The translations under genes and the position numbers were made by a program. 64,000 bases of DNA from Blastocystis sp. Blastoise (taxonomy: Eukaryota; Protista; Bigyra: Opalinata): positions 1,178,001 to 1,242,000 of the forward strand of contig JBBPEB010000034.1 of the NCBI GenBank assembly GCA_039096225.1, given 5' to 3'. Below, in pieces: positions 20,496 to 44,980 of this stretch. Every line of letters begins with the position of its first letter. Within the stretch, counting starts at the first letter, position 1. The notes under the pieces were generated by a model. That model saw only the letters and a list, made by a program, of their open reading frames with translations, did no database searches and had not been told where the DNA came from.

Positions 20496-21030
20496 TCTCC
20501 ATCTCCGACAACTCGAATCATTTCACAATTAATATTATTCTCTTTTATATATGCTCTTAAACAACTTATAAAGGCAAATCTTCCTGAAGTAGGCTTTATA
20601 TTTATATTTTATATATATTTATATATATATACATTAAGTACACAAAGATTAGTTGTTTCACCTTCTTCAATATCTTTATAATATTCTATGATATTATCAA
20701 TTTGATTTTTTCTTCTACTCATGATAGTTTTAACTTTTTGACATCTTACCATTCCATCAAAAATGAAACAAACTGGATTCATCTTATATTTCTTGAACTT
20801 ATAAAACAGTATATCAATAATATTATATAAAACAAAAGGGCAAATATCATATTCAACTGGTAATCGCTTTGTAAGATCAAAAAGAATATTAGTACCATCG
20901 ACTACTATGTCTATTTCTTCATCAGTATCACTACAAGAAATGTTATGAGGGTGACTTTTTATATAAAATACACAGCTGATGGAAAATGATTGTTATATGT
21001 TGTAAAACCTTTCAATCCACTTATTCCCAT
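16846..21030 (-). CDS. PIN-domain XPG-like protein (Asteroid/FAM120 type) with Asn/Gln-rich C-terminus, multi-exon
   Basis: MGISGL start, IVVDGTN, FIFDG, R-rich helix, VLSNDSDFFLY and LFGILAGCD are the hallmark FEN/XPG-like PIN motifs. Confidence 0.8.
17070..17250 (-). repeat. Coding 18-bp tandem repeat (NQNNYH / NQNDYH)n
   Basis: About 10 copies visible in the DNA and in the translation. Confidence 0.9.
17792..17876 (-). repeat. Coding 9-bp tandem repeat (ENK)n
   Basis: (ttttcttta)n on the + strand. Confidence 0.9.
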
Positions 21031-21824
21031 GATAGGAAAATATTGATTTAAACAAGAATAACTAATATATAAATCAGGAAAGTATTTAATTTTTACTTAA
21101 ATAATACTTTTAAATGTTCTGTTTTGATTAAAAAAACTCCTTCAGTAACTTGTTGAAATTCTCAAATTTCCACGGAAAAATCAAGTTAGATACTTGGGTA
21201 GAGAAAAAGTTGCTATTTCATTTTACGATTATTTGGCGTTTTTTTTATAACCAGAAATATGACGTTTTAAAATACCATCAATAGGCGAAATGAAACACGA
21301 TTATTTGTACATTTTCTTGATCAGTTAAAAAATAATGAAAAACAATAGCAACTTTTCGTATTTTGAATCAGTTTAGGGTAAATACTTAATAAGAATTTAT
21401 ATACATATTTACATATATATATGATAAATTCTAAAGATAATAAGAAAATCTGTGATTCAAATGAGTAAATAATATTGATTGAATTATAATAAAAATAAGA
21501 AATATTCTTGTATATTTTATAAAAAATGACTTATTGTCGCAAAATAATTACGGTAAATTTTTAAAAATCTTGTTTCCACATATTTATATATTTCATTAAT
21601 TACAAGTTAACAAAGATATTTAGTAAAATTTTATTAGTATGTATGTGTTTTCTATACATTTCCGTACTTAAATAGAGTGCAATTTTTAAAAAATAGCCTA
21701 GATTATAAATAAATATTATAATTACATTAATAATATATTACTATAGACTAATAATATTGCTATATATTGTGTTACATCCAAACTCAAAGAGTCTAAAGTT
21801 TAAAATAAAACAGATCTTCAAGAA

Positions 21825-24719
<2,895 letters not shown>

Positions 24720-24768: not shown

Positions 24769-24852
24769 TTCTCTTCTAACTGAGGGTGTAATAATTTTGA
24801 TTTCTTTTTCTAAATTTATATTTTTAAGTGAATATTTATATACTTTTTTTTA
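24769..24852 (-). repeat. Inner segment of the hAT right TIR
   Basis: Reverse complement of 22122-22205. Confidence 0.95.
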
Positions 24853-26295
24853 GAGGCATTGTTAGAAATACCCAAAAAAACCATAATTATTTTAACCTGC
24901 CCAAAAAAAAATCGAATTGTTAGAAATACCCAAAATCTTTCAAAATTTTTGTTAAAATACCCAAAATTTTTACAAAATTGGTAGAAATACCCAACTGTTT
25001 ATTTTAGACTCTAAACGATTGGTGGTTTGAAAACACAAATTCTTCATAGCCAATTAAAATTCTTTTTATTTCTTTTGTCATTATTAGAAAAAATATACTC
25101 AAGAATATATTTATATTTTCTTTATTAAAGCTTACATAAAAATTTTGTAGTAATTAAAACATAAGAAATATTTTAATAGATTATTATAATAATTTAGAAA
25201 AGTAGTTATTTAATTTAAGATAAGCATTTTTATTTACAAATTAAATATAATTATGTCAAATTTTTAAATTAAGGATAGTATAAATACTTCAGGCACTTAT
25301 ATCGATTGATTAGTGTCATTTATAGTGTAATAATATATTGTATTGCTCTCGAATAAAGCTTTTAAAAACTACAATGTAATTTTTCATGATTTTTCATTTA
25401 TTAATCACTATAAAAATGAAATTTGTTGTCCAGAATCACAAAAATATACTTTATTTTAATTTTGACATATTTAGACAATTAAAGCTTTAATTACTGCATA
25501 TTTAACAACAAAGATATCTGTAAATCAATATTAGATTCATGTAGACTATTTTTATGTTATAATTTGGTAACTGATTCAGTTCAGCCACAACAAGAAGTGG
25601 AAATATGTTTTTGTTTGATTAAGGTGAACTATCATAAGTTTAAACATAGTGAATAAATAACAAAATTTGAGACTGTAAAAACATATGGAGTCAAAATTAT
25701 GTATGTAAAAAGTTTCAACTAGAAAATGTAGTTTTACTATATATGTAAAAGCTAGGGTATCGAATAAAAAAACAAAAAACCCCAAAAAAGAAGACTTGTT
25801 TACAGATGTTTCATTTCAAATTACCCGTTTATGTTCCATTTCCAAGGTGATGATGTTTCTGGATGGGTAGTCAAAAGATATTGTTGTCACGACTCTTCTG
25901 AGCAAACTTAAATAAATAAATTATATTCTTATATTAACATATTTATAGAAATGCAATCGTTTGTATATATTATATATCAAATGAAACAAAAAGCAAAAAA
26001 TAGATTATAAGTTGTTAAAAAATGTTAAAAATAAATTAAATGATTTAAAAGATAATACTAAACAATATATAGTGCTAAAAGAAAGAATAAAAGAAAACAA
26101 ATTAGACATATCATATGAACTATTAATATTTTTAATCAAGAATATATATATATGTATTACATGATTCTACATAAATATATTAATATATTAGATTTTCTAT
26201 TTTATACACAATATTTAATATATATAAATTTATATATATATGTATACATGTATACTATTCAATACATATGTATATCTATTCTATATACATATACA

Positions 26296-26361
<66 letters not shown>

Positions 26362-26619
26362 CATTCTATACATATGCTATTTATATCTATATATAGAATT
26401 CTAATATATCCGATTAAGTATATATATATGTTCAATATATATATAATATATGTTTTTCTATATATGTTATTCTTCATACTAATAAAAGTAACATATATAC
26501 ACAATTCTATTTATTGTTTTATATATCAATATATATATAATTCAATATATCAAATATTGTGTATAGCGTTTTAAAAAATGAGAATTCAACTTCAATTGAA
26601 TGAAAAAAACGATTCTTAG

Positions 26620-29600
26620 AATAATAGGAATAGGAAAATTATAATAAGAAGTGGTAGTAATATACGTAGATGAAGAATGATAATAGAAGCTGATAAAAAA
26701 AGTAGCAGCAGAAATAAAATGAGAAAGAGAAAAAGTAGAAGTAGAAGGACAAGGAGATATAGAAGAAGAAGAACAAGGACAAGGAAAAGGACAAGAATAA
26801 GACGAGTGAGAAGGAGAAGGAGAAGGACAAGGAGAAGAAGAAGAAGAAGAAGAAGAATAAGACGAGGGACAAGGACAAGGACAAGGACAAGAAGAAGAAG
26901 AATGACAAGGATAAGGACAAGAAGAAGGACAAGAAGAAGGACAAGGACAAGGACAAGGACAAGGACAATGAAAATGGCAAGAATAAGAATAAAAAGGATA
27001 AGGACAAGGACAAGGACAAAAAGAAGAAAGACAGGAGAAGAAGAAGGAGAAGAAGAAGAACAAGGAGAAGGAGAAATATAAGGATAAGAACATGAAAGAG
27101 AAAGATAAGCACGAGAAGAAGAAGAAAAAGAAGAAAGAGAAGAAAATAAGAATAAACCAAGAATAAGCATAATAAGAAAAACATCAGTAGAAGGTAGGAA
27201 TAAGTAGAATGAGAATGATTAGAAGTAGAAGTATAAGGATAATATAAGAAAAAGCAGACGGAGAAGGGAAAATATGTGGATGTAGAAGAAGAAAATGAGA
27301 ATAAAAGTGGAAGAAGAAGAGAATAAAAAGATAATAGGAAGGAGAAGGATAATAAGAGAATAAGAATGGCAAAGTGAAGGAGGGAAAAAAGAAAGAGAAG
27401 AAGAAAAATTATAAGAAGAAGACAAGAAGGAAAAAGAGAATAGAAGGAGAGGAACAAAATATGAATAAGAAGGAGAATAGGAAGGAGAAGGATAAGAAGG
27501 GGAAGAGGAAAAGAATGACAAAGAGAAGGAGGAGAAGGAAGAAAGAACAAGAAAAAGACGAATGGAAAAAGGAAAGAGAAGAGAAGAATAGCAAAGAGAA
27601 AGAGAAGTAGAAGTAGAAGTAGAAGAGGGAGAAGAAGGAGAAGTAGAAGAGGGAGGAGAAGGAGAAGGAGAAGGAGAAGGAGAAGGAAAAAGAAAAAGAA
27701 AAGGAAAAGGAGAAGGAGAATAAGAAGGAGAAGGAGAAGGAGAATGACAAGAATAAGAAGGAGAAGGAGAATGAAAAGGAGAAGGAGAAGGAGAAGGAGA
27801 AGGAGAAGGAGAAGGAGAAGGAGAAGGAGAAGGAGAAGGAGAATGACAAGAATAATAAGGAAACGGAGAATGAGAAAGAAAAAAAGAAAGAGAAAGAGAA
27901 AGAGAAGGAGAAGGAGAAGGAGAAGGAGAAGGAAAAAGAAAAAGAAAAGGAAAAGGAGGATAAGTAGAAGGAGAATGACAAAGACAAGGAGAATGAAAAG
28001 GAGAAGGAGAAGAAGGAGAAGGATAATAATAAGAAGAAGAAGGAGAAGGAGAAGGAGAATGACAAAGACAAGGAGAATGAAAAGGAGAAGAAGAAGAAGG
28101 AGAAGGATAATAATAATAAGAAGAAGGAGAAGGAGAAGGAGAACAAAAGGAAGAAGTAGAAGTAGAAGTAGAAGTAGAAGTATAAGGACAAGAATAAGAA
28201 TGACAAGGACAAGGACAAAGACAAGAAGAAGAAGAATGACAAGGAGAAGGACAAGAATAAGAATAAAAATAAGAAGGATAAGAAGAGAAGGATTAGGACA
28301 AGAATAAGAAGGATAAGGACAAGGACAAGAAGAAGAATGACAAGGACAAGGACAAAAAGAAAGACAAGGATAAGAAGAAGACGAAGGACAAGATGAAGGG
28401 CAAGAAGAAGAGCAAGAGGAAGAAGAAGAAAGAGAAGTAGAAGGACAATGACAATGACAATGACAATGATAATGACAATGGCAAGAAGAAGAAGTAAAAT
28501 AAGAAGAATAAGAAGAATAAGGATAAGAAGAAGTAGAAGGAGAAGGAGCAGGACAAGATAATGGACAAGAAAAAGAAGAAAAAGAAAAAGAAGAAAGAGA
28601 AGAAAATAAAAATAAACCAAGAATAAACATAATAAGAAAAACATCAGTAGAAGATAAGAATAAGTAGAATGAGAATGATTAGAAGTAGAAGTAGAAGTAT
28701 AAGGATAATATAAGAAAAAGAAGACGGAGAAGGGATAATATGTGGGTATAGAAGAAGAAATATGAGAATAAAAGTGGAAAAAGAAGAGACTCAAAAGAGA
28801 ATAGAAGGAGAGGAGCAACATATGAATAAGAAGGAGAATAGGAAAGAGAAAGAGAAGAAAGAGAAGAAGAAGGAGAAGGATAAGAAGATAAGAATGACTA
28901 AGAGAATGAGGAGAGGAAAGAGAAGAACGAGAAAAAATGAAGGAAAAAAAAAAGAGAAGAAGAAGAAGGAAAAGTGAAATTATAAAGCGAAGAAGAAACA
29001 GAAATAGAAAGAAAATGATAAGAAGAAGAAGAAGAAGAAGAAGACAGAGAAGAATATATGGAGCAGGAAGAGAATAAAAAGAGGGAGAAGGAGAGGAGCA
29101 AAGTATAAATAAGAAGGATAATAGGAAAGATAAGAAGGATAAGAAGGATAAGAAGGATAAGAAGGACAAGAAGGACAAGAAGGAGGAGGAGAAGAAGAAA
29201 AATTATAGGAAGAAGGATAAGAAGGAAAAAGAAAAGTAGGTTTTAAAAGAGGAAAGAGAAAGAGAAGGACAAGAAGGAAAAAAAGAGGAGAAGAAGAAAA
29301 ATTATAAGAAGAAGGATAAGAAGGACAAAGAGGATGAGGAGAAGAAAGAGAATAAAGAGAAGAAAAAGAATAAAGAGAAGAAAGAGAATAAAGAGAAAGA
29401 AAAGAAACAGACGAAGGAGAAGGACAAGAAGAAGGATAAGAAGAAGGACAAGAAGAAGGACAAGAAGAAGAAGAAGAAGAAGGATAAGAAGGAGAGGAAG
29501 GAATGCCAAGAAGAACAAGAGCAAGAACAAGAAGAAGAAGAAGAAGAAGAAGGATGAGAAGCAGAGGAAGGAGTGTCAAGAAGAAGAAGAACAAGAAGAA

Positions 29601-30860
29601 CAAGAAGAAGAAGAAGAATAAGAAAGAGAAGAAAAACAAGAAGAAGGATAAAGAAAAGTAAAAGTATAAATAGAAGGAGAATATAGAAAAGGAGATAGAG
29701 ATGAAGACAAAAAAGTAGACGTAGAAGGAGAAAAATAAATAAATAAAAGTATAGTAGTAGAAACAGAAGTATAAATAGAAGTATTAGGAATAAGAAAATG
29801 AGAATCATTAGAAGAAGAAAAATGAGAAGAAGAATGAGAAGAAGAATAAAAATAAGAATAAGAATAAGAAAAAGTGAAAAAGAAGAAGAAGAATGAGAAA
29901 TTGAATATAGAAAAAAGAAGAAGAAGATGAAAGAGAAAGATAATAGCAAGGAGAAGTATAAGTACAAGAAGACTGAGAAGAATAAAAAGTAGTAGAAGCA
30001 AAAGCACGAGTACGAGTAGGAGTAAAAGCAGAACTACAAGTAGATATATAAGCAGAAATATAAGTAGAATAATAAGAAGTATTATCAGTAGTAGTGTAGC
30101 TGTAGAAATAGAAGAAAAAATAAAAGAGTAGTAGTAGTAGAAGAAATATAAGTAGAAGTACAAGTAGGAATAGAAGAATGAAGGAAAGAAGGAAAGAAGG
30201 AAGAAGCTAAAGGAGAAGAATTGCAAGGAGAATAAGGAAAAAAAAAAAGGAACAAAATGGAATGGAAATGATAACGAGAGAAAAAAGAAAAGAAGAAGAA
30301 AAACAATAAGAATAAGAAGATGTAGAAGGATAATAAAAGAAGAAAAAACAATAATAATGAGAACAAGAAGTAAATCTATAATGAGAAGGAGAAGTGGAAA
30401 GGAAGTATAGTAGAGAAGAAGAATAATGAAAAGTAAAATAAGATGTAAAGGTGAAAGAAGCATAAGAAGAAGTAAAGTAGAAGAAAAAGAAGAATCATGA
30501 AAGGATAAGAAGAATGAAGAATAATGAAAAGGATAGGGATAAGAAGTATAATGAGAAGGACGAAGAAGTAATAGTAGAATTTGTGAAGAGGTAATAGTAA
30601 AGAAAAGAAAAATTAATATCTATACATAAAAGAAGAAAAACTAGAGTAAGATGTACAGTAGAATTATGAATGAAGAATGAAGAATAAAGAATAAAGAATT
30701 AAGATTAAGAATGAAGAATGAAGAATGAAGAATGAAGAATGAAGAATGAAGAATAAAGAATGAAGAATGAAGAATGAAGAATAAAGAATGAAGAATGAAG
30801 AATGAAGAATGAAGAATGAAGAATAAAGAATGAAGAATGAAGAATGAAGAATGAAGAATT
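26620..30860 (+). repeat. Purine-rich low-complexity tract (GAA, GGAGAA, GGACAA, AGTAGA units)
   Basis: About 4.2 kb dominated by A/G on the + strand. Confidence 0.95.
30668..30858 (+). repeat. 7-bp satellite (GAATGAA/GAATAAA)n
   Basis: Directly visible tandem array. Confidence 0.9.
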
Positions 30861-30994
30861 AATACCAATAAAACTAAAGAATATATAATATTATAAAAAT
30901 AGAATAATAATAATATTATAAAGACAAAAAATAACATATATATTATTAATAGTCAGTTAAAACAAACTAAATATATTATTAAATACATATATAC

Positions 30995-31467
30995 CTTAAT
31001 AAAGACTTGAATCATTGCAATCTGATTCCCAGGTTGTGCTTCAGTTTGATTGGTTTTACTAAAGAAATAAATACGTAGAATAAATTAAATAGATAAAAGT
31101 ATATATATATTAAAGAAACAACTAGATAGAAAAGTAGGAGCTAATTCAATTATAAAAATAATAATACTAATGAAAACAAAATAAATATGTTATGTGAATG
31201 ATAAAAACATACTAATAGCATAGAAATAAAACAGATATAGCAAAGAATAAACAAAATGAGAAAATGTAAAATAATTATATACCTTAGATTCATTAGTATT
31301 GTTTACCAAGACCTTTAGAGTTGATTTGAAACCATATGAAGCTTGTTCTGAATATCTAAACAATACGCAACCAATTGATCAACTGATTACTATATAAAAC
31401 AAAATATTTGAAGAGAGTAAACTATATAATATATATATTTATGACTAGAAAACATACGTAGATCCAT
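30995..31467 (-). pseudogene. Decayed multi-exon gene remnant, pointing left
   Basis: ATGGATCTAC|gtatg...tatag| exon structure with an in-frame TGA (MDLLIS*SIGCVLFRYSEQ...). Further exon-like island at 30995-31058. Confidence 0.45.
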
Positions 31468-31857
31468 TTTATATGTTTATAATGACAATATATGAAATAA
31501 ATCAATATTTGAATCTCAAGAAATAATCATTCTGAGGATGGAAACAGGGATAAATCAGTCTAAATAGCGGAAGCAACCTCTTTGATAAAAACTTTTTTGT
31601 GATTCAGTGAACAAGTTTTAAAAATAATTTCTAGAGATTCAAAGTATGGGATAAAAAGTCTTTTTTGATATGGTCCCTATTCTTAAAGTTTTTTAGAATT
31701 ACTTCAATCCGTGAAAATCTTATTCAGCATCAGCTTAAATGAACTGCTGAAAGAGTATATTTTTTAAATATTATTATATGGATTATTTAATTATTTAGAA
31801 GGTTATTTTATACTTTATATTTATATTATATTTTTATATGTATATTATTATAGATTA

Positions 31858-32305
31858 GGAATGAAATGAGCACAGATAATGGACCAATTGGTGATTCGTT
31901 TATTCTGGTATATGTTAATTTTATCTAATATTATTCATATAGGCTGAAGAGACTAGTTTGAAGAGCCTGTAAACGTTAGAAATTCATATTGGAAGAAGTT
32001 CCATTTGTCAACATTTCTTCACTGGAAGTCTTGATCAAATATGTTTAAGTGGTATGTTATTTTATATATATTTATCTATCTTATAATTATATAGTGAAGA
32101 GTTTGAATCAAAACAAAATGAATTACATTTTTCAGAAGATGTTGATATATTGGATGTTTTTTAAATTTATTCAACCTTGTTATTGTCTTTTAAGTTTATA
32201 ACTATATTATTTATAATGTATATTATCTACATATATATAGAAATGGTGAATGATTATCTATTTGAGTTCTTTTCTTTTCTTATTCAGCACCATCATTGAG
32301 TACTT

Positions 32306-32343
<38 letters not shown>

Positions 32344-32430
32344 TAATTATTATATCTTCTATAGATACAAGCAGAAAATAAATGATGATTATGTATCACA
32401 ATTCTAAAAATAATATAAATCAGTTAAAAG
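31858..32430 (+). pseudogene. Decayed multi-exon gene remnant, pointing right
   Basis: Exon-like islands bounded by tag|...|gtat with stops. They dissolve into (TA)n-rich DNA up to about 35100. Confidence 0.45.
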
Positions 32431-33026
32431 TATATATTTATTTTATTTTATTTATTGTTAGCTAAATATAATAATTTATAATTGTTTAATATATGTATAT
32501 TATATATGTATATATTATTTATTATCGTTTTTATTCTATTATATATATATATATAATATTATTCTTCATTTATTATTATATATAGATGAGATAATAATTA
32601 ATTCGACTATCTCCTCATTATACACACATTGTATATATATATCTACATATATTCTAATAATTTTTGTATATATTATTGTATTAATATATATATATATATA
32701 TATAATATTATTGATTATACTATATGAACACTATCTTCTTATCAATACAATTAATATTTATATATATTTTTATCAATATATGCATATTTCCTATTAACTT
32801 TTTTTATAATCTATTTAAAAATTTTGTATATAACATTTTATTACTATTATATATTCACTATTTGTTCTTATAATATATTATTTAATATGTTATATATATA
32901 TATATATATATATAGTACTATCACATTTATTATAAGTCTATTTCTCCTTAATCGATATTACTACATAATTTATATAATAAGATGTATATATATTCTTTTC
33001 TTTTCTGTTATTCTTTTTATTCTTTT

Positions 33027-33066
<40 letters not shown>

Positions 33067-34495
33067 ATTACTTTTTTTATTTATTCATTATTTATATATA
33101 AATAGTTATTGTGGTATACAAGATTAGTGGCTATTATGTATCTATATTATTCCGTATAAATTTTATTAACATATACATATATTTATATTTATATATATAT
33201 ATATGTATAGTATTCTATTCTGAGTTATGTACATCATTTTTTATTATATATAAATAAGGTATATAGTTTTATATATATTTTTATATTAAATTATAATCCC
33301 CTCTAGATAATTTATTTTATTGTTTTATAATTCATATAATTATTATTATTATTAATATTTATTATATATTCATCCTATATGTATAAATATATTTAATAAC
33401 TATCACATTATATGTGTTTATTTTTATTTATTTAGTTTTATAAGTTATATATATATATATATATATACTTAGAGATATATGTATATAAATTATTATTATG
33501 TATTATTTATTTTTATTATATTATTACCATAATATGTCTATTTGCTTACATATGTATATATAGTTGTTTTATTTCATATTCAAACGTTGCTTTAGTGAAC
33601 AAATATATATATTTATATATGATATTATAGAATTATTTTGTATTCATTATATATATATATATATTATGCATTAATTTTTACATGTTTGTTATACTTAATA
33701 TATATATATATATGTAATTATTTTATATCTATATATATACATATATATATATAGATATCATTGATATTAATATTCAAAGTATATATATATAAACATATAT
33801 AGACTTATATATAGTATTTTATATGTATTCATATTATAATATATTATGTATAGTTTAATAGTTATATGTAAGTCATCCTTTTATGTTTCTTATGAATTTA
33901 TATAAATATAGTTCTTTAATTCTGAATATGTATATATTATTATATATATCATCTTATTCTATATATATATATATATTATGTATTTTTTATTTAATATAAA
34001 AGATAATATTTTGTGTATTTAATATTTTATATCAATTATTCTTCTATTTAACTCTTTTATATCATTTATCTTTCTACAACTTTATTATTTATTATCTTTT
34101 TTAAATACCATATACCTTATAATTTATTATACGTACATAAAGTAATAGTCATAGCGCTTCTTTATGTATGTTTTATTCAATTATGTTAGTATATGTATTG
34201 TGGTATATATGTATATTAATTGTCGTTTATTTATATATCGTTTTGTATTTATTTTGAAATAAAGATTATATACATATAGTTATTATGTATATATATATAT
34301 ATATATATATATAACATTATTGATGTGAGCAATTTATTTTTCGTAATATATATTAAGTCTACTTCTCTTATATATAAATATATCTAATAATTTACTATAT
34401 GTTTTCCAACTTTATATATATATATATGTATTTACTATTTTCTATTATTATTATATATATATTGCTAATGAAATTAAGATATTGTCCAGGTAAGA

Positions 34496-34526
<31 letters not shown>

Positions 34527-35068
34527 TTGTTTTTATTCTTATAAGTATTATGTTCTTATATTATATTTAGATATGTTTTTTTCTTTTTGTTATTTTTTTT
34601 TAATTATACTGTAAATATAAATACATAACTTTCTACTCTGCTTATTACTTCTTTTATAGTATATATCTATATTTCTTTCTATAAATATGTCATTCATCTA
34701 TATGCTATTATATATATTTTAGAATCCAAGCTCCTAATAGAAACTACTATAATTAATGATGATACAACCTTTTTGGTATATACATATTTATACTATTATT
34801 AGTTTTTTATAACTTATTATGTAATATTTTATTAATATTTTAACCAAATTTATTTATATATTATTATTCATTTTCTTTATTCTCTAACTATTTATAGAAC
34901 ATATCCTTAGCTTGTCTCCTATGTATATATGGCTTTAAATATATATATATATATATTATATTCTCTTTTTATATCTCTGATACATTATACTTATCACATA
35001 TTAATAGTTATCTTTTATTATAAGGTTTTTATTATATAGATTATTATTAATAGGTATAATGGAGTATT

Positions 35069-35100
<32 letters not shown>

Positions 35101-35175
35101 TATAATTATATAATTATATTTTGGGTTTTTGTCTGTTAAACATATATACATGGTTATATTCAAATAATTAATATT

Positions 35176-35243
35176 CCTTAGACTGAATATGGTTAGTAAC
35201 AATCATTAATAGATTGTTATCAGGTTCAATTCCTGATCTAGGG
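35176..35243 (+). ncRNA. tRNA-like cloverleaf, copy 1
   Basis: CCTTAGA/TCTAGGG stem; CTGA-ATATGG-TTAG arm; TAACAATC-ATTAATA-GATTGTTA arm; TCAGG-TTCAATT-CCTGA T-arm. Confidence 0.7.
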
Positions 35244-36256
35244 TCATATATTATATTTTTTATAAAAAAATTTAAATATTTTTCTCTATAGATATTCTCA
35301 TTCATTAGAACCAGTATGAAAGGGTATATTGAGTTTCATGTAATTGAATAAACTCTATACATCGTTAGTCGCTCTTCTATATTGTTTTTAAATACCTTTA
35401 CTTAAAACCAAACACATTCACAATTACATTCGCCTATAATTTTCTATTCAATAATTTATTTTGTTAATCATTCTTCTAATCAATTCTACACACAAATAAA
35501 AAATAAATATTCATCAATAACACCTTGAAGTCTATAAACACGCAATGCATTCTTTGTCTATACTCTTAAAAAGCATTTCTACTGTTTATATTAACATGAT
35601 TGACACAAATAATCTATTCTAACATTTATAAACTACTTTCAAAACTTTTAAAGAACCTTGACAAATCTACATTACCTAGAAAACTATTATAATTAACTTT
35701 AGTTTATATAGGTCATAATTAAATTCAAATTACTAATAGAAAATTAAAATAACGACATTCTAACTCAATATATCAACTAGAAAAATCAATTGTGTTTGTA
35801 ACTTCTCTAAAATTGAATTAATTAGTGAAATATGTATTTAAATTAATGTTGAATTTAAATTCAAACACACACAAACTCACCTTTTCTGACAGTTCTACAC
35901 ATTTAGGCAATCTAGTGACTATCATATAATCGACTAATTTTTGTTGTCTTCATCAAGTCTAGTGATTTCCTCATGACCATAACCATTAATTTCATTTTAT
36001 GTAACACTCTATAAATAATTAATCAATTAACTAATTTTATTTACATAAATACATACTCCATCAACAACAAGAAGACATCATGAGTAAGAATAACGGTTTA
36101 AAGTATTTAAATAAAATAATAAATAATAAAAAATAGAAATATTAAGATTTCAATAAAATTTAATAAGTTAATTTATAGTGAAGTTTCAATAATCATATAA
36201 AAAATATGATTAATTTCGTTTTTGTATGTTTTAAGTATATATTTATCTATATATAG

Positions 36257-36638
36257 GCCCTAGGAGTATAGTAGAGTACCTTCCAGTCTCCATTGGCAGA
36301 TTGATCTGTTGTGCTATGTTCTCTTTCTCTATGGTGAGCTTGTCTGAGTGGTGTAAAGTGGTTGAGCTAGATGGTCTGCTATTGTATTGTGGTTTAAATG
36401 GGATGATGTGACGTCACCATACAAAACTATTTCTTTAGGCTTTCTCACTGAGTAGCAATTGATCGGTTATATTAACTGAGCGTGGCTTGATACTTTCAAA
36501 AAAAAAATTACTTAATTGGATAAATAGATTGGTCTTAAATTACAGAGAAGCATGGATCTCTTCACTTAATCACTACCTATACAACTCAAATGCTTATAAT
36601 TAGAGTTAGTTTGTATTAGTCATATTCAGATTCTAGAT
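36257..36638 (+). pseudogene. GC-richer exon-like remnant with stops and frameshifts
   Basis: Bounded by atatag| and |gtatat. Composition differs from the surroundings. No long open frame. Confidence 0.4.
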
Positions 36639-36921
36639 GTATATATTTTCTGTATTTATTTTCTTTATAATTATAATTATAATATTATATAGTATTTATA
36701 TAAGCTATTATATAGTTATTAAGCCTAGTTCTTGTTCTTCTTGTCACTAACTTCTTGGTTTTTCTTATTTATGTATATATATATATATATATAATTGACT
36801 TCTTTTATTTTGCTTATATATTATTATTTTCTTTATTATTAAGAATAAATTTTGTTCATATTTATTATTAGTTTAATTCAATATATGTATAGACTTATTT
36901 CTATTCTTCTCTTTTTTTATT

Positions 36922-36961
<40 letters not shown>

Positions 36962-36999
36962 TATATAGGCAAAACTTTTATATATTTGTTTTTTTTCAT

Positions 37000-39430
37000 T
37001 CTTATTTTCTCCTCTTGTCCTGAATTGGCCTTGTTCTCCTCTTCTCTCTTCCATTCATCTACTCTTCTAGTTTTTACTCAATTTTATTCTTATGCTCTTA
37101 TGTTATATAGAACAGTTATTGTTTTTCTTAATATTACTTTATAGTATGTTTTATTTCATGTTCTTCTATTCTATATTCTAGTTTTTCCTTCACTTTCTTC
37201 TTTCCTCCATTAATTATTACTGGTTCTTCTTCTCCTATCATTACATACTCTCTTCATTTCAATCTCTTTATCATGATCATCTTCTTTTTCATTTCCTTCT
37301 ACTTTTCCTTTTCCTATTCTTCTTCTCCATTTCCTTCTATATTATTACTTCTTTTTCTCATCTTCTTCCAATTATACTTTCTTTATTTCTTATTCATTTT
37401 AATTATTCATCTACACGTTCTTTCTTTATTACTTCTTCTTCTATATATCCTTATTCTCTGTCCCTTTGTTCATTCCCTTCTCGTTCTTCTTCATCTATTT
37501 ATCCTTCTTCTATTTATCCTTCTTCTATTTATTTTAATTCTGAATCACCTTCTTTCTCTCTCCTTCTGTTTCTTCTTCTTCTATTTGATCTTATTTTTCT
37601 TCTTCTCTTCTTCTTCTCTTTCTATACATTCTTCTTCTATATATTCTTTATCTCCTATCTTCTTCATCTGTATTTTCTCTTCTATTTATCCTTATTCTTA
37701 TTCTACATTTTCTCCATATCATTCTCCTCCTATATCTTCTATACCTCCTTTATCTCCTTATTCTTCGTCTATGTCTTCTATTCTTCTTCATCTTTTTTCT
37801 TCTTCTATATATGTATTCTACTTATTCTTCTCTATCATCGTTTATATATCTTTCTTCTATATTTTCTGCATCTACTTCTTCTTCTATATCTTCTATTTAT
37901 CATTATTTTCCAACATATTTTTCTATTGTACTTCTTCTTTTCTCTTCCTTCTCCTTCTTTTCTATATCTTCTGTTTATCTTATTCTTCGTCTATATATAA
38001 TTATTCTCTTTATTCTTCTTCTTTATATATATATTCTTCTTTTTCGATATATTCTTTTTTTTCTTTTCGCTCTTTTCCTTGTTCTCCTTCTCAATCTCCT
38101 TCTCTTCATTGATATCCTTCTTCTTCTTCTATTCATCTTTTTCTCCTTCTCCTTCTTCTTCTTCTCCTTCTCCTTCTTCTTCTTCTTCTTCTTCTACTTC
38201 TCCTTCTCCTTCTTCTTCTTCTTCTTCTTCTTCTTCTATTCATCTTCTTCTCCTCCTCTGTCTCCTTCTCCTTCTTCTTCTATTCATCATCATCATCATC
38301 ATCATCTTCTTCTTCTTCTTCTTCTTCTTCTTCTTCTCCTATTCATATTTCTTCTTCTTCTTCTTCTTCTTCTTCTTCTTCTTCTTCTCTTTCTTCTTCT
38401 TCTTCTATTCATCTTTCTTCTTCTATTCATATTTCTTCTTCTTCTTCATTTAATCCTTTTCTCCTCCTCTGTTTTCTTCTTCTTCTATTCATCTTCATCT
38501 CCTTCTCCTTTTCCTTCTATTCATCATCTTCTTCTTCTCTTTCTCCTTCTACTTCTTCTTCTCTTTCTCTTTCTTCTTCTTCTTCTTCTTCTTCTATTCA
38601 TCATCATCATCATCTTCTTCTTCTATTCATCTTTCTTCTTGTTCTTCATTTAATCCTTCTTCTTCTTCATTTAATGCTTCTTCTCCTCCTCTGTCTTCTT
38701 CTTCTATTTATCCTTCTTCTCTTTCTATTCTCCTATATATCCTTTATCTCCTGTTTTTCCTTCTCAATCTCCTTCTCTATATCTCTTTCTTTTTATCCTT
38801 TTTCCACTTTTTCTATATTTTTTGCTTCTTATCTTTCTATATCTTCTCTATATCATTCCTCTCCTTCTTCTTCAGCATCTTCTTTTTATATCTTATAATT
38901 GTTTCCTCTTTATATTATTCTCATTTTATTCCATTTCATCTATTTTTTTTTATCTAATTATTTTCAATATTTATTATACAGAATATCATTTATATTTAAT
39001 GTTTTTCACTTTCATTATCTTTTCCATATACATTATAGTCTTATTTGCTTTTCCTACATCTTCACTTGTTCTTCTTATGTGTATTCTCCTCATATTTTTA
39101 TTTCTTTTCTAATAGATTTTCCTTTATAGTTCTTCTAACTCTTCTCTACCTTCTTTCTTCTTTTTCTCTTCTACATGATTTTCTATTCTTCATCTTTCTT
39201 TTTTCTTTTTTATCTTCTTATCTTATTATCTATATGTGCTTCCTCTTCCTCTAATTCTTCTTTATACATATAAATTCTTTTCGCTCTTTATCCTTCTAAT
39301 CAATTCCTTCTTCTTCTCATTTAATTAATATTATTCTTCTTCTTAATTTATTTTCTCTTATTCTTCTTATTCTTGTCTTTAATTTTTTTCTATACACAGT
39401 TCCTGTCTTTTATTATCTTTTATATCTATA
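37000..39430 (+). repeat. Pyrimidine-rich low-complexity tract (TTC, TTCTCC, CAT units)
   Basis: About 2.4 kb dominated by T/C on the + strand, the compositional complement of 26620-30860. Confidence 0.95.
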
Positions 39431-39665
39431 TATCTATTTTCTCTTCATATTTTAATTATTTCTATCTGTTATACTAATTAATCTAATATTTATTTTTTAT
39501 TAATAAAAAGATTTTCCAATTTTTATTTCTTATTTATACTTATTATTTCATTAATTTATATACTACTTATTTATATATTTATTTTATATATTTTAATTTA
39601 TATATATATATATATATATATTGGATATTATGTATTTTAATATTATTATCATTATTATTATTACT

Positions 39666-39731
39666 CTTATGCTCTAGAAGGTGAGAGGCTATCATAATTA
39701 GATAGCAATCAGGTTCAACTCCTGACATAAG
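39666..39731 (+). ncRNA. tRNA-like cloverleaf, copy 2
   Basis: CTTATG/CATAAG; CTCT-AGAAGGTG-AGAG; GCTATC-ATAATTA-GATAGC; TCAGG-TTCAACT-CCTGA. Confidence 0.7.
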
Positions 39732-41034
39732 TCATTCCTTATATATATATATATATATTTTTATTTAATAAAAGTTTTAATTATATGTTCTTTTTACACT
39801 TATGAATGCATTTATTAAATTATTTATAGCTCTTCATCCTTCAAAACTTCATAGTTTCTGAAATGAGTTGTAATCTGTTTTATTCTCAACAGTGTATCGT
39901 ATTCAAAATATGTTAGAATTGAGTTAAATGCAGTTTTAAAACTTAGATTCATTTTTTATTTTCAAAATATACTCAAATACAGAGTCTATTTAGCAATCAT
40001 TAATACTTTAGCAACTGTAGTTTATTATTTTAAACTGAATTCTGGTCAGTATGCTCAACATAAGCAACCAAACACAACACATACACATTCATGATTTTTA
40101 AACAACATTTTCCATTTCGACATTTACTTGATCCATTATAAAACTATCTGTCCTTTTGATATAGTATCGAGAAACTAATATCATATACCAAACAAAACTT
40201 GTTAACTTGAATCTCGTCATCTATTAAATACTTTTCTTAATCAATTCACAGTTCATACTCTTAAAACAGTTATTTGAGATTAATATTTATATGTTTGTCT
40301 TTAAACAATGTAACTATGACATTGTAATAGTATATATGAAAATATAAAGAATCAACAAATCTGTTAATTATCAAAAAATAAGTTCTATTTTCTAAAAACA
40401 TCTTTATAATATTTATAAACTCATATACTATAAATACATAGATCTTATATAAAGTATTCATTGAGTAAATTAATTTGTCAGTAAATTAAAAGTATGTTAT
40501 ATAACGTAATTCTATGTTATCTTTTTAATGAAGTTTATTTCATAGCTGTTTATGGCTTATTTGTCTATCAAACTTATTTTTTAAAACAATTACAGACAAT
40601 TATGTTATGATCCTTGTCTATATTGTTATTCTATTGAATTAATAGTATAAATACAAGTTATATAACAAAATAAATGTATATATTGATTAAAATAAGGAAT
40701 GAATATAAATAAATAAAAATAGATAAAATTGCCAAAAAGCAAATTCTTAGAATTATATAGTACAATAAACGAACTTCTAATAGAAACTTAAAAATCGATT
40801 GATTGGATCAAATTGTCAAATCCTAACGTCATAATATGAATTATTCTTTTAATTTTTTATTAATTTAAATTCTAGAAATACATCTAATAAACACGGTTAT
40901 TATATAAATTAATACGATTGGACAATGAAATCAAAATGTTAACAGATATTTTTGGGTATTTCTACCAAATCATACAAAAAATTGGGTATGTATACAAATC
41001 AATAGGGAAATCTGGGTATTTCTAACATTTTTCC

Positions 41035-41255
41035 TTTTTTTTATCACAGAATATTTATTTTTATTAATTTTAGAACCTTGTTTTGCATCTAAATATTATA
41101 AAAATAAAATTTAAAACTCTAAAAAAAAATAATTTTATTACTTTCTTTAGTTTTTGGACCTGGCTTTATTTTTGGAGGTCTTCCAGGTTTCCTATGTTTT
41201 TTTGAATTTTTTGAAACTTTGAAACTTGTAGATTCCTGAGAATTTATTGATTCTA
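41035..41255 (-). repeat. Middle segment of the hAT right TIR
   Basis: Reverse complement of about 21910-22130. Confidence 0.95.
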
Positions 41256-41849
41256 CAAGATTGATTGTTAAACATCATTACTATATATATGAGAATAGGC
41301 AAAAAAATTCCCATTGGTCAGTTTTTGGAAAATGCATTTGATTGGCTAAGGTATACTATAGTTTGTAGCCTCAACTCCTCTAAACTTACGGGGAGTTAAC
41401 TTTTGGTTGAAACACAGTTCAATACGATATAACGTGTAGTTTTGCAACATATATTTGGATAAGCGATATTGTTTATAATTAAAAAGTTATTAATAAAAGA
41501 ACAGAAAATATGATTTTTGAGTCGTTTTTGATTGGCTCTTTGGGATGACCCCGATAAAAATTGTTGACCAGACAATTGGAAAATAAACATGGGGTAAACT
41601 TGATTTTTTCTCAATCCCACAATATACGTTATCCGTGTTTATTCTTTATATTTATCTATTTTTTAATACTTTTTCATATTGAACACGTGAGGCCTTAACG
41701 GTCAAATTTAGATTCTCAATTTGACATCATATTCTGATTCAGGAGGTCAAAAAACCTAGGTGTACCAATTTTGAGCTCCTGAGGACGATTTTTGAGTGAT
41801 CGATATTTTCTTCGATCTTCTTATAATTGACTAATATTGTAGTATTGTA

Positions 41850-43330
41850 ATCAATGGATCCTCAAACTACTATAGTTAAAACAAAGTTTTAAAATAACGA
41901 GTTTGAGTGTCACAATTTTGAAAAGTGTGAATTAAGTGGTCTTAGAGTAAGAGATTCAATATAATGACTTTTAATTAGTAAACTAGACTTATAACTCTAT
42001 ACTATGTTAAAAGAAGAGTCAAAATTATGAAGGTCAAAGTGTATGAGCAAATGACAAAATGTGTCTTAAAAAGTAAAAGGGTTTCTATATGTGTTTAGAA
42101 TCATATATTAAGTTTATTTTATGAATAAGAGCTTTAAATAAATAGTTTAAGGTTGTCAAATTTAAAAGAATGTGTAAAACATAGTCTTAGACTATGAATA
42201 AAAAATTTAGAGATATTAATTAGTATACAGCTGTAGTAGCTCTACAACATATCAAAAGTACAGTTAAAATAATTTTTAGAGAGTGGATGTGTGAAGGGTT
42301 GTGACTATTATTTAAAATTTATTTTTACTTCAGTTTATGTTAAATCGTGAATTTCGTGCACTGTAGAAAAATTGAGTCAAAAAATCAACTCTAAGGGTCA
42401 TAAATTTAAAAAAATGTAAAAATGAGTGACTTAGAGGACGAGATTCAATATTTGAGTGTTTATTCATTAAACTAGAGTGTATGAGCTATATTATGTTAAA
42501 AGGAGGGACAAAAATATTTTGATCAAAGTGTATGACCAAATGGTAAAGTGTCTTTAATAAGTCTAAAGTGTTGACTAATGTGCTCATATTGTCATATAAA
42601 GTCTACTATGTAAATATTAGCTTTTAAAAATATGTTTAAGCCTTTCAATTAGTAAAAATATGTTCAAAGTAAGTGATAAAATGAGAATTTTAAGAAACGA
42701 GATATTATTTAGTATATACTAAGACACGCTCTATAACATATCAAAAATATAGCAAAATCTATTTTTAGAGAGTGGATGTGTAAAGGGTTGTGAGAGTTAT
42801 TGAAAAAATATTTTTCACTCAGTTTATCCAAAATGACGTTTTTGGAACACTGTAGAAAAATTAACTTCAGAAATCAACTCTAAGGGTCTTAATTTTTAAA
42901 AATGTGAAAATGATTGACTTAGAGGACGAGATTCAAAATTCCCTCTCACTTTCATATAACTAGACCACACACTCTATATTATGTCAAAAGGAGGGAAGAA
43001 AATATTTTGGTCGAAGTAAATGAGCAAATGCAAAAGGTTTATAAAATGTCTTAAAGTGATGACCAATGTGTAGCTATGGTCATATTAAGTAAAGTGTGTA
43101 AATATTAGCATTTAAAAATGAGTTTAAGTGTCTTAACTTTTCATAATGTGTCAAGAAGGGTCTTTAAGAAAGAGATTCAAAACATTTGCTTTTATTTAAT
43201 AAATTGTATAATAAACTCTATACTATATCAAAAGACTGACGGAAATTATTCTGATACAGTGGATCTTGAATGGGTAAAGTCTCTTTAAAAGTTACTATTT
43301 TGAGTTATTTATGTTAAAATCATTATTTGA
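41850..43330 (+). repeat. Tandem array inside the Helitron: ~244-bp monomers arranged as ~489-bp dimers (about 3 dimers)
   Basis: GACTTAGAGGACGAGATTCAA near 42428 and 42917, with a variant near 41940. AGAGTGGATGTG near 42280 and 42768. A CTATA(C/T)TAT(G/A)T(T/C)AAAAG-like motif recurs about every 244 bp from 41998 to 43217. Confidence 0.8.
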
Positions 43331-43703
43331 GACGAATATAAAAATATTAACTTTTTAAATAATGTTTTAGTTGTCAAAGTGACAATGAATGTTGACTTTG
43401 TTATACTAAAAACTTCAAAATTCTTTTAAGAAGTATTAAAATGAGTTAAAATTATTTTATTACGTTTATTTAAATGAATTTTATGAATTAAAAATTACTC
43501 AAGAGTACTTCACATTATGACTCATTTCTAAAGTTATTGACTTTAAAAACTCAAAGAATGTTTTAAACAGTTGTTTAATTATTACTAAATATAAAATATA
43601 TTTAAAAAATAAATTGTTGTGAAAAAATTGACTTAGAAAGTGATTTTAATTAAAAAATAATTTTTTCTCTTTTTTAATTTCTTATTTAAAAAGTCTAAAA
43701 TAA

Positions 43704-43771
43704 TCTTATATCAGGAATTGAACCTGATTACAATCATAAAATAATTGTAACTCTCCATATAGAGTATAAGA
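43704..43771 (-). ncRNA. tRNA-like cloverleaf, copy 3 (inside the Helitron)
   Basis: Minus strand: TCTTATA/TATAAGA; CTCT-ATATGG-AGAG; TTACAATT-ATTTTAT-GATTGTAA; TCAGG-TTCAATT-CCTGA. Confidence 0.7.
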
Positions 43772-43984
43772 AATTAATATTTAATAAATAATAAATAATA
43801 TATATAATATATAATATATAATATATAATATATAATAAATGACTCATATTAAAAACTATATATATATAATATATAAGATAAAAGATAATAAATATTTTTT
43901 ATATACTCTTTATGCAGCCGCGGTCCGGGGCCGTTAGGCACTGGACCTGCGGCGTGACCCTAGTATTTTATAATAATAATATAC

Positions 43985-44703
43985 CTATTTCATTCAATTT
44001 TATCGAAGGGCCTCTTAATTTGTAAACCTTTCGGGGAGGTGAAACTAAGTTATTTGAAGAATTATAATTCATTTCTTGAAGATCTGTTTTATTTTAAACT
44101 TTAGACTCTTTGAGTTTGGATGTAACACAATATATAGCAATATTATTAGTCTATAGTAATATATTATTAATGTAATTATAGTATTTATTTATAATCTAGG
44201 CTATTTTTTAAAAATTGCACTCTATTTAAGTACGGAAATGTATAGAAAACACATACATACTAATAAAATTTTACTAAATATCTTTGTTAACTTGTAATTA
44301 ATGAAATATATAAATATGTGGAAACAAGATTTTTAAAAATTTACCGTAATTATTTTGCGACAATAAGTCATTTTTTATAAAATATACAAGAATATTTCTT
44401 ATTTTTATTATAATTCAATCAATATTATTTACTCATTTGAATCACAGATTTTCTTATTATCTTTAGAATTTATCATATATATATGTAAATATGTATATAA
44501 ATTCTTATTAAGTATTTACCCTAAACTGATTCAAAATACGAAAAGTTGCTATTGTTTTTCATTATTTTTTAACTGATCAAGAAAATGTACAAATAATCGT
44601 GTTTCATTTCGCCTATTGATGGTATTTTAAAACGTCATATTTCTGGTTATAAAAAAAACGCCAAATAATCGTAAAATGAAATAGCAACTTTTTCTCTACC
44701 CAA
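43985..44703 (-). repeat. Outer segment of the hAT right TIR
   Basis: Near-perfect reverse complement of 21194-21912. One substitution noticed near 44181. Confidence 0.95.
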
Positions 44704-44980
44704 TTAGATACAGAAAAATAATTTTTCCATAAAAAATCTTTAAGTAATGCGTATTAAAAAAAAAAATGAATAATTGTGAAAATATTGATTTTGTAAGACA
44801 ATTATTATTATTTCTCGTGATTATTATTCTTTAGATTTCAAGAAATCGTTTTTCTTTTAAAAAATTATATTTTTGTGAATTCTTCCAATTTAAAAAAAGG
44901 TTGAAATTTTTATACTATTCTACATTATGATAAGAATGATCTTAATCTAATTATTGTAAAATTATAGTCAAATTGAGGTA

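Follow-up and report, generated by a model that had tools for sequence, protein, structure and literature searches.

A 43-nt GT-AG intron was found in only one of the two nearly identical arms of a hAT-like transposon of Blastocystis sp. Blastoise, and comparison with related elements supported an exact loss of this predicted intron from the left arm. The element occupies positions 21194-44703 of the window analysed here (the whole stretch of 64,000 nt from contig JBBPEB010000034.1, GenBank assembly GCA_039096225.1, positions 1,178,001 to 1,242,000 of the forward strand), and each of its terminal inverted repeats (TIRs), about 1 kb long, holds a promoter and the first three exons of the transposase gene. 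The precise left-arm loss is very probably real. The explanation that fits best overall, in which the loss used a spliced transcript as template and the arms were homogenised by gene conversion, is judged evenly balanced between right and wrong when taken as a whole.

With two nested insertions removed from the right arm, a Helitron and a MULE-like element, an alignment of the two arms spanned 1,012 nt and showed a single substitution (21716 T/C) besides one 43-nt segment with GT..AG ends. On the minus strand the right arm reads GAAATAG, then 21 nt beginning gtatatt (43984-43964), the Helitron, and 22 nt (41274-41253) ending in cttgtag, followed by AATCAATA. The left arm runs from GAAATAG into AATCAATA uninterrupted at 21912/21913, exactly without the 43 nt. 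Since TAG ends exon and intron alike, the gap has four equivalent placements, one of which gives the GT..AG boundaries (gtatat...tgtag). The right arm has exon 1 as two pieces of 88 + 111 nt and the left arm has it as one of 199 nt, with zero exon bases gained or lost. The preliminary description, made from the letters of the window, had claimed a 43-nt GT-AG intron precisely absent from the left arm, a TAG common to the exon end and the intron end, and retention of the next two introns in both arms. The arm comparison agreed on all of these, the retained introns becoming visible only after the MULE-like insertion that splits the right arm was recognised.

The segment is 84% A+T and follows nucleotide 88 of the coding sequence (CDS) in phase 1. 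If it stayed in the transcript, a stop would follow in frame five codons on and the right-arm open reading frame (ORF) would end after 34 residues; exon 1 of the left arm is read through over its 66 codons. Introns in the genes inspected (about 20 sampled) were mostly 34-62 nt long and began with GTAWWT. From base composition, a random 43-nt insertion or deletion with GT..AG ends falling on the exact nucleotide of the intron in a paralog was estimated at roughly 1e-4 to 1e-5. Conservation of position and phase marks the segment as a real, ancestral spliceosomal intron, its splicing being predicted.

The preliminary description had allowed for either loss or gain and had proposed that the intron be scored in all copies of the family. 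The window element is single-copy at high identity and has four closer paralogs in the genome, whose spliced gene models were compared exon by exon. The paralog on contig C3 (55% amino-acid identity) has the same layout, with exon 1 inside 1,082-nt TIRs, and both of its arms carry a GT..AG intron of 44/45 nt that follows nucleotide 88, likewise in phase 1, between exon pieces of 88 + 111 nt. The paralogs on C24 and C28 (41%) contain a 41-nt phase-1 intron 19 residues past a common SPPR motif, and the spacing in the window element is identical. In the paralog on C16 (43%), whose arms are 97.9% alike, exon 1 of either arm is an unbroken 199 nt, and intron 2 is kept. Intron 1 was scored as present in three of the four paralog lineages as well as in the right (sister) arm. 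The branching order of the window element, C3, C16 and C24/C28 within their five-member clade did not emerge from the paralog tree; because any topology gives the ancestor of the window element the intron, the paralogs support a loss in the left arm, with an independent loss in C16.

Within elements of this family the two arms are 97.9-99.9% identical, whereas different elements differ by 25-60%. Cut-and-paste transposition does not regenerate TIRs. Given arms that are alike within divergent elements, the simplest reading is that the arms evolve in concert by arm-to-arm gene conversion. It follows that the intron loss cannot be dated from how alike the arms are. The presence of the intron in one arm only would then be a transient heterozygosity between arms, and the intron-less arms of the C16 paralog would be its end state.

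The transposon was delimited by the identical 8 nt, TTAGATAC, just outside both outer TIR ends, which identify 21194-44703 as one element of about 4.6 kb before the two nested insertions (Table 1). Its arms form the inverted repeat pairs 21191-21912 with 44706-43985 and 21910-22131 with 41255-41034. A simple repeat search gives a TIR of 941 nt; the actual length is 1,012 nt because the 16.2-kb insertion splits the right TIR. The left arm is the copy that leads into the full transposase gene, where an internal ORF (22215-24719) has a BED-like Cys/His N-terminus and a weak match to the hAT dimerisation region. Against the hAT C-terminal dimerisation family (PF05699, cut-off 21.4 bits) the window copy scored 15.8 bits, below the cut-off, and the C3 paralog 23.3 bits. 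The family is called hAT-like because the C3 paralog passes this cut-off and has its own 8-bp target-site duplication, ATCGAATT, as the window element has TTAGATAC. The assignment carries the caveat that the TIRs are about 1 kb long rather than about 20 bp; hAT TIRs normally measure 10-25 bp, and those found here measure 1,012 nt (window) and 1,082 nt (C3). In a check for an RNase-H-like DDE core, the middle part of the transposase had no Pfam or PDB sequence match beyond a faint one to DUF659. A comparison of the C3 C-terminus with PDB sequences gave only spurious leucine-rich matches, and a homologous-protein search with the N-terminal region returned zero matches. Two (TAT)n-type trinucleotide tracts (22758-22976 and 23657-24170) lie in frame in the transposase ORF and would encode runs of poly-Tyr and poly-Ile/Leu.

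The insertion inside intron 1 has the features of a Helitron, with a 5' TC, a 3' CTAG end with a hairpin 11 nt before it, insertion between A and T without target duplication, and a multicopy distribution (at least 40 copies genome-wide with exactly these ends). The second insertion, putatively MULE-like, was examined at its termini, which are of the TGTTAGAAATACCC type, and for the arm that its removal restores. Excising it joins 24769-24851 to 41043 onward, and arm homology then reaches left-arm position 22205. A contig from the X1 run (contigs, kind uncertain) branches at 22205/22206 into the sequence at 24769 and below, reproducing the inner junction independently. An X1 contig reaches at least 22740 and 467 nt further.

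Further precise intron differences were found between other duplicated genes of this genome. Two copies of a prefoldin gene (L054, G000:C28:49200-53300, minus strand; L055, G000:C8:627800-631900) are about 98.6% identical over 4.1 kb and differ by three exact GT..AG introns, of which one of 57 nt is present only on C8 and those of 62 and 45 nt only on C28. The frame is preserved, and introns of 41 and about 190 nt are kept in both copies. Two copies of an Era-like GTPase gene (L070, G000:C14:1191500-1195500; L071, G000:C14:1230200-1234200, reverse), 98-99.7% identical, showed four exact phase-0 GT..AG differences arranged reciprocally, with 37, 44 and 39 nt in one copy and 48 nt in the other. 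Three of these four have zero junction microhomology, and two of the differing introns surround a micro-exon of about 36 nt. A 43-nt difference upstream of the Era-like gene was rejected as an intron, being a tandem-repeat unit. A 55-nt GT..AG intron distinguishes the inverted copies of the SDHA gene (L068, G000:C18:585500-589500, reverse; L069, G000:C18:601000-605000), which are 99-100% identical. A further difference, a segment of 45 nt, falls within the conserved GNM-HADDW motif. No placement gives this segment an AG end, its length is divisible by three and it contains no stop codon; it represents either an intron of non-canonical type or a microsatellite insertion in coding sequence. With the hAT arms (one), prefoldin (three), Era (four) and SDHA (one), nine exact GT..AG differences were counted in about 12 kb of duplicates, three of the nine without junction microhomology. 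The 62-nt prefoldin intron has no other copy in the genome, which argues that these differences are not introner insertions. Exact boundaries with zero microhomology are not those of end joining and point to a process that uses spliced RNA.

In the mechanism we favour for the left arm, a spliced transposase transcript would be copied into cDNA by one of the intact reverse transcriptases of the genome, or would itself act as RNA in break repair. The spliced template would then be used in short-tract repair or recombination, removing intron 1 from the left arm. The cases without microhomology and the supply of reverse transcriptase favour a spliced-transcript template, which is rather likely provided that the loss is real. 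A search with PF00078 identified 20 loci above the cut-off (for example C23:75618-76424 and C4:2419696-2420514), at least 18 of which have intact frames of 2,400-2,800 amino acids; pairs occur on C10/C13/C14/C29, and several pairs lie about 8.6 kb apart. The intact frames and the pairing suggest recently active retroelements. Extended to the whole genome, gene conversion would homogenise duplicates while a transcript-templated process erased short introns singly, leaving mosaic, reciprocal patterns on 98-100% identical backgrounds. This wider regime is held tentatively, at slightly less than even confidence.

Whether a real loss took place at all was weighed against two alternatives. That the 43 nt are not ancestral, either as an intron gained by the right arm or as filler or target DNA that arrived with the Helitron, is scarcely credible. 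In its favour, the first 21 nt also start intron 1 of the unrelated, duplicated prefoldin gene, which supplied the two near matches to the 21-nt half with its exon. The bare 21-mer, however, had 15 matches in the genome against 13 for a reversed control, no commoner than chance in low-complexity sequence, and the introns of C3 and C24/C28 occupy the same codon and phase. The introner type of gain was ruled out by this control frequency together with the uniqueness of the 62-nt prefoldin intron. The preliminary description had named flanks matching a donor Helitron locus as the sign of filler. When this was checked, the 22-nt half had no second occurrence in the genome, no other Helitron copy had these flanks, and homology ended at exactly the Helitron termini in 12 + 12 other copies inspected, with unrelated flanks in each; Helitron filler was ruled out on these grounds. 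The other alternative is an assembly or polishing artefact, in which the left arm truly has the intron and spliced, RNA-derived reads led a polisher to delete it; such an error would strike the left arm only, since the right-arm intron holds the Helitron. It would fit that the precise differences all fall in introns of 37-62 nt while the prefoldin intron of about 190 nt is kept in both copies, that reads with a 40-60-nt deletion can be aligned, that the differences are scattered reciprocally between near-identical copies, that the sole public run holding the locus may be RNA, and that the left-arm junction comes from the assembly. Coverage by the X1 run of 20600-22740 began only at 22176 and skipped the arms, a search of contigs on record for any encoding the 73-aa left-arm ORF returned zero matches, and a metagenome scan with the 28-nt end of exon 1a gave no match. 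Polishing of assemblies with RNA reads is nevertheless unusual, and intron 3 (34 nt), equally removable and unique to the left arm in mapping, was retained. The Era introns are both absent around the micro-exon of about 36 nt, which would be hard for a deletion-tolerant aligner, the C16 paralog lacks the intron in both of its arms, which are 97.9% alike, and few small insertions or deletions separate the duplicates in non-coding AT-rich DNA, consistent with accurate DNA-based assembly. An artefact is considered improbable.

As to the route of a real loss, long inverted repeats are prone to breakage, and a break in or near the left-arm intron might have been closed by microhomology-mediated end joining between the TAG of the exon end and that of the intron end. 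The 3-nt TAG with its four equivalent deletion placements would allow this, and the intron is small, 5'-most and lost singly with its neighbours kept, traits that match the pattern in Caenorhabditis and Drosophila (PMC3698931) and agree with the view of intron loss through double-strand-break repair (PMC3020277). The TAG follows from the splice-site consensus, however, and does not discriminate between routes, because the retained C3 intron has the same TAG/TAG. Exact events would be only a small fraction of possible break deletions unless selected, and the exact Era differences with zero microhomology (three of four) indicate that a splicing-informed route operates in this genome. Deletion of genomic DNA by this route is on balance unlikely, if by no means negligible, and end joining in general, once the loss is granted to be real, is a possibility that we would not expect to prove correct. 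The preliminary description had also suggested a purge, by which the loss would have freed the expressed copy of an intron burdened with a Helitron, and a variant of this would have the Helitron once in intron 1 of both arms through conversion, with a cDNA event then clearing the left copy. Arm-to-arm conversion does seem active in the family, and removal of a 2.7-kb intron, far above the local range of 34-62 nt, would restore expression. The purge is unsupported, as nothing points to a past Helitron insertion in the left arm; the variant requires two extra steps, and the left arm has not received the MULE-like insertion of the right arm either, suggesting that large heterologies are not converted. 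We regard it as very improbable. Several points also weigh against a spliced-transcript template. The intron lost is the 5'-most, intron 2 only 111 nt downstream is kept, and the same is seen in C16; with introns 2 and 3 retained, the classical signatures of reverse transcription, 3' bias and joint loss of neighbours, are not seen. The TAG microhomology is compatible with plain deletion, the 21912/21913 junction is known from the assembly, transcription of the gene and splicing of the intron are predicted from DNA, and the polarity is a matter of parsimony over three intron-bearing lineages in a five-member clade whose tree is unresolved.

Precise intron loss is a known process, and the present case is a clean, polarised specimen of it and not a new phenomenon. 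Loss mediated by mRNA and reverse transcriptase has been inferred in yeast, fungi and Dictyostelium (PMC4683709; PMC3652778), and the left arm resembles those cases in the exact removal with unchanged exons, in the source of reverse transcriptase in the genome, and in that the intron-less copy leads into the full gene. It departs from them (PMC4683709) in having lost the 5'-most intron but not the next one, which lies 111 nt away. For that mechanism to apply here, the conversion tract would have to be very short, the template only partly spliced, or the repair templated directly by RNA. The small intron, the 3-nt TAG at the junctions and the single loss are shared with microhomology-mediated intron loss (van Schendel and Tijsterman 2013, PMC3698931), unlike which other exact differences in this genome have no microhomology and the TAG belongs to the splice-site consensus. 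RNA-templated double-strand-break repair is documented for engineered systems in yeast and human cells (PMC12065846; PMC11390984) and would yield exact intron removal near a break in a transcribed gene without a long cDNA; those systems differ from the present case, which is seen in sequence with no sign of a break or of RNA templating. As in within-species polymorphisms of intron presence and absence, two states stand on near-identical backgrounds, with an independent loss in the related C16 element. Here, in contrast, the states are found not in alleles or species but on a single DNA molecule, one in each arm of a transposon, and paralogous elements give the event its polarity as a loss. The window element itself is like MuDR and other MULEs in that its long TIR holds the promoter (PMC3310237). 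It shares with classical hAT elements (Ac, hobo, Hermes) the 8-bp duplication, the hAT C-terminal dimerisation region and the BED-like Cys/His N-terminus, and differs from them in TIRs of about 1 kb that take in three transposase exons with two or three introns.

Table 1. Positions in the window of the parts of the hAT-like transposon and of the insertions nested in its right arm.
Feature	Position	Strand	Remarks
Left target-site duplication, TTAGATAC	21186..21193	.	Same 8 nt at both outer TIR ends
Left TIR, 1,012 nt: promoter region, exon 1, intron 2, exon 2, intron 3, start of main exon; without intron 1	21194..22205	+	
Left-arm transposase exon 1, 199 nt, continuous	21825..22023	+	Junction 21912/21913 = CDS nt 88/89, phase 1
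Intron 2, 53 nt, in both arms (right 41089-41141)	22024..22076	+	Frame from sequence and C3 comparison
Intron 3, 34 nt, in both arms (right 24810-24843)	22131..22164	+	
Main transposase exon(s) to stop codon	22165..24719	+	Two long trinucleotide-repeat tracts; weak hAT C-terminal dimerisation match
Right TIR, inner piece (= left 22123-22205)	24769..24851	-	Severed by the MULE-like insertion
MULE-like (putative) insertion in right TIR, ~16.2 kb	24852..41034	.	T8 target duplicated at 24844-24851 and 41035-41042
Right TIR, middle piece: exon 1b (41142-41252), intron 2 (41089-41141), exon 2	41043..41252	-	
Intron 1, 3' half, 22 nt, right arm	41253..41274	-	TTTAAC branch-like motif, ..TGTAG acceptor; unique in genome
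Non-autonomous Helitron, 2,689 nt, inside intron 1, antisense to gene	41275..43963	+	5' TC, 3' CTAG, 3' hairpin, A/T target
Intron 1, 5' half, 21 nt, right arm	43964..43984	-	GTATAT donor
Right TIR, outer piece, including exon 1a (43985-44072)	43985..44703	-	
Right target-site duplication, TTAGATAC	44704..44711	.	

The window is AT-rich (about 22% G+C) and belongs to an assembly of 33.3 Mb in 34 contigs, in which several further features of the paralogs were recorded. The C16 paralog (L010 and L058, G000:C16:1497000-1513400) lies within an inverted repeat whose arms each extend for at least 4.65 kb, with 97.9% identity and 97 gapped positions, and far exceed the arms of about 1 kb in the window and C3 elements. 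A hAT-type tip motif was not found in the stretch examined, which stops short of the outer ends of this repeat. The C24 (L014/L056) and C28 (L015/L057) paralogs are two near-identical copies that share about 700 nt of identical upstream sequence, and no long TIR was found around them within 10 kb. Contig C28 also bears the second copy of the C8 prefoldin gene, and parts of this contig may be a haplotig or a segmental duplication. In a second, high-copy hAT-like family, an alignment of 11 copies was dominated by unrelated flanks and gave no clear GT..AG difference. The Pfam-matched part of two ribosomal protein L3 genes (G000:C3:1632298-1633389 and G000:C2:230369-231451) is one uninterrupted, intron-free frame.

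The route by which introns are removed is still debated between cDNA recombination, RNA-templated repair and end joining, and most evidence on intron loss is comparative and old, with the original junctions blurred. The arms of the window element offer an unusually clean junction for tests of mechanism, with both states on one molecule at a difference of about one base per thousand, the ancestral state set by the paralogs, and a likely end state in the C16 element, intron-less in both arms. The case is distinctive for its location in two arms of a transposon, for the repeated loss in a paralogous element and for the group of similar cases that this genome contains; if the other cases hold against raw reads, they would form a set large enough to test the effects of microhomology, position and expression. 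The case also documents a lineage of hAT-like elements with 1-kb TIRs that contain their own promoter and first exons and whose arms appear to evolve in concert. If the wider regime of conversion and transcript-templated erasure is true, this Blastocystis genome would be a natural test bed for intron loss, and for whether gene conversion spreads or reverts such losses.

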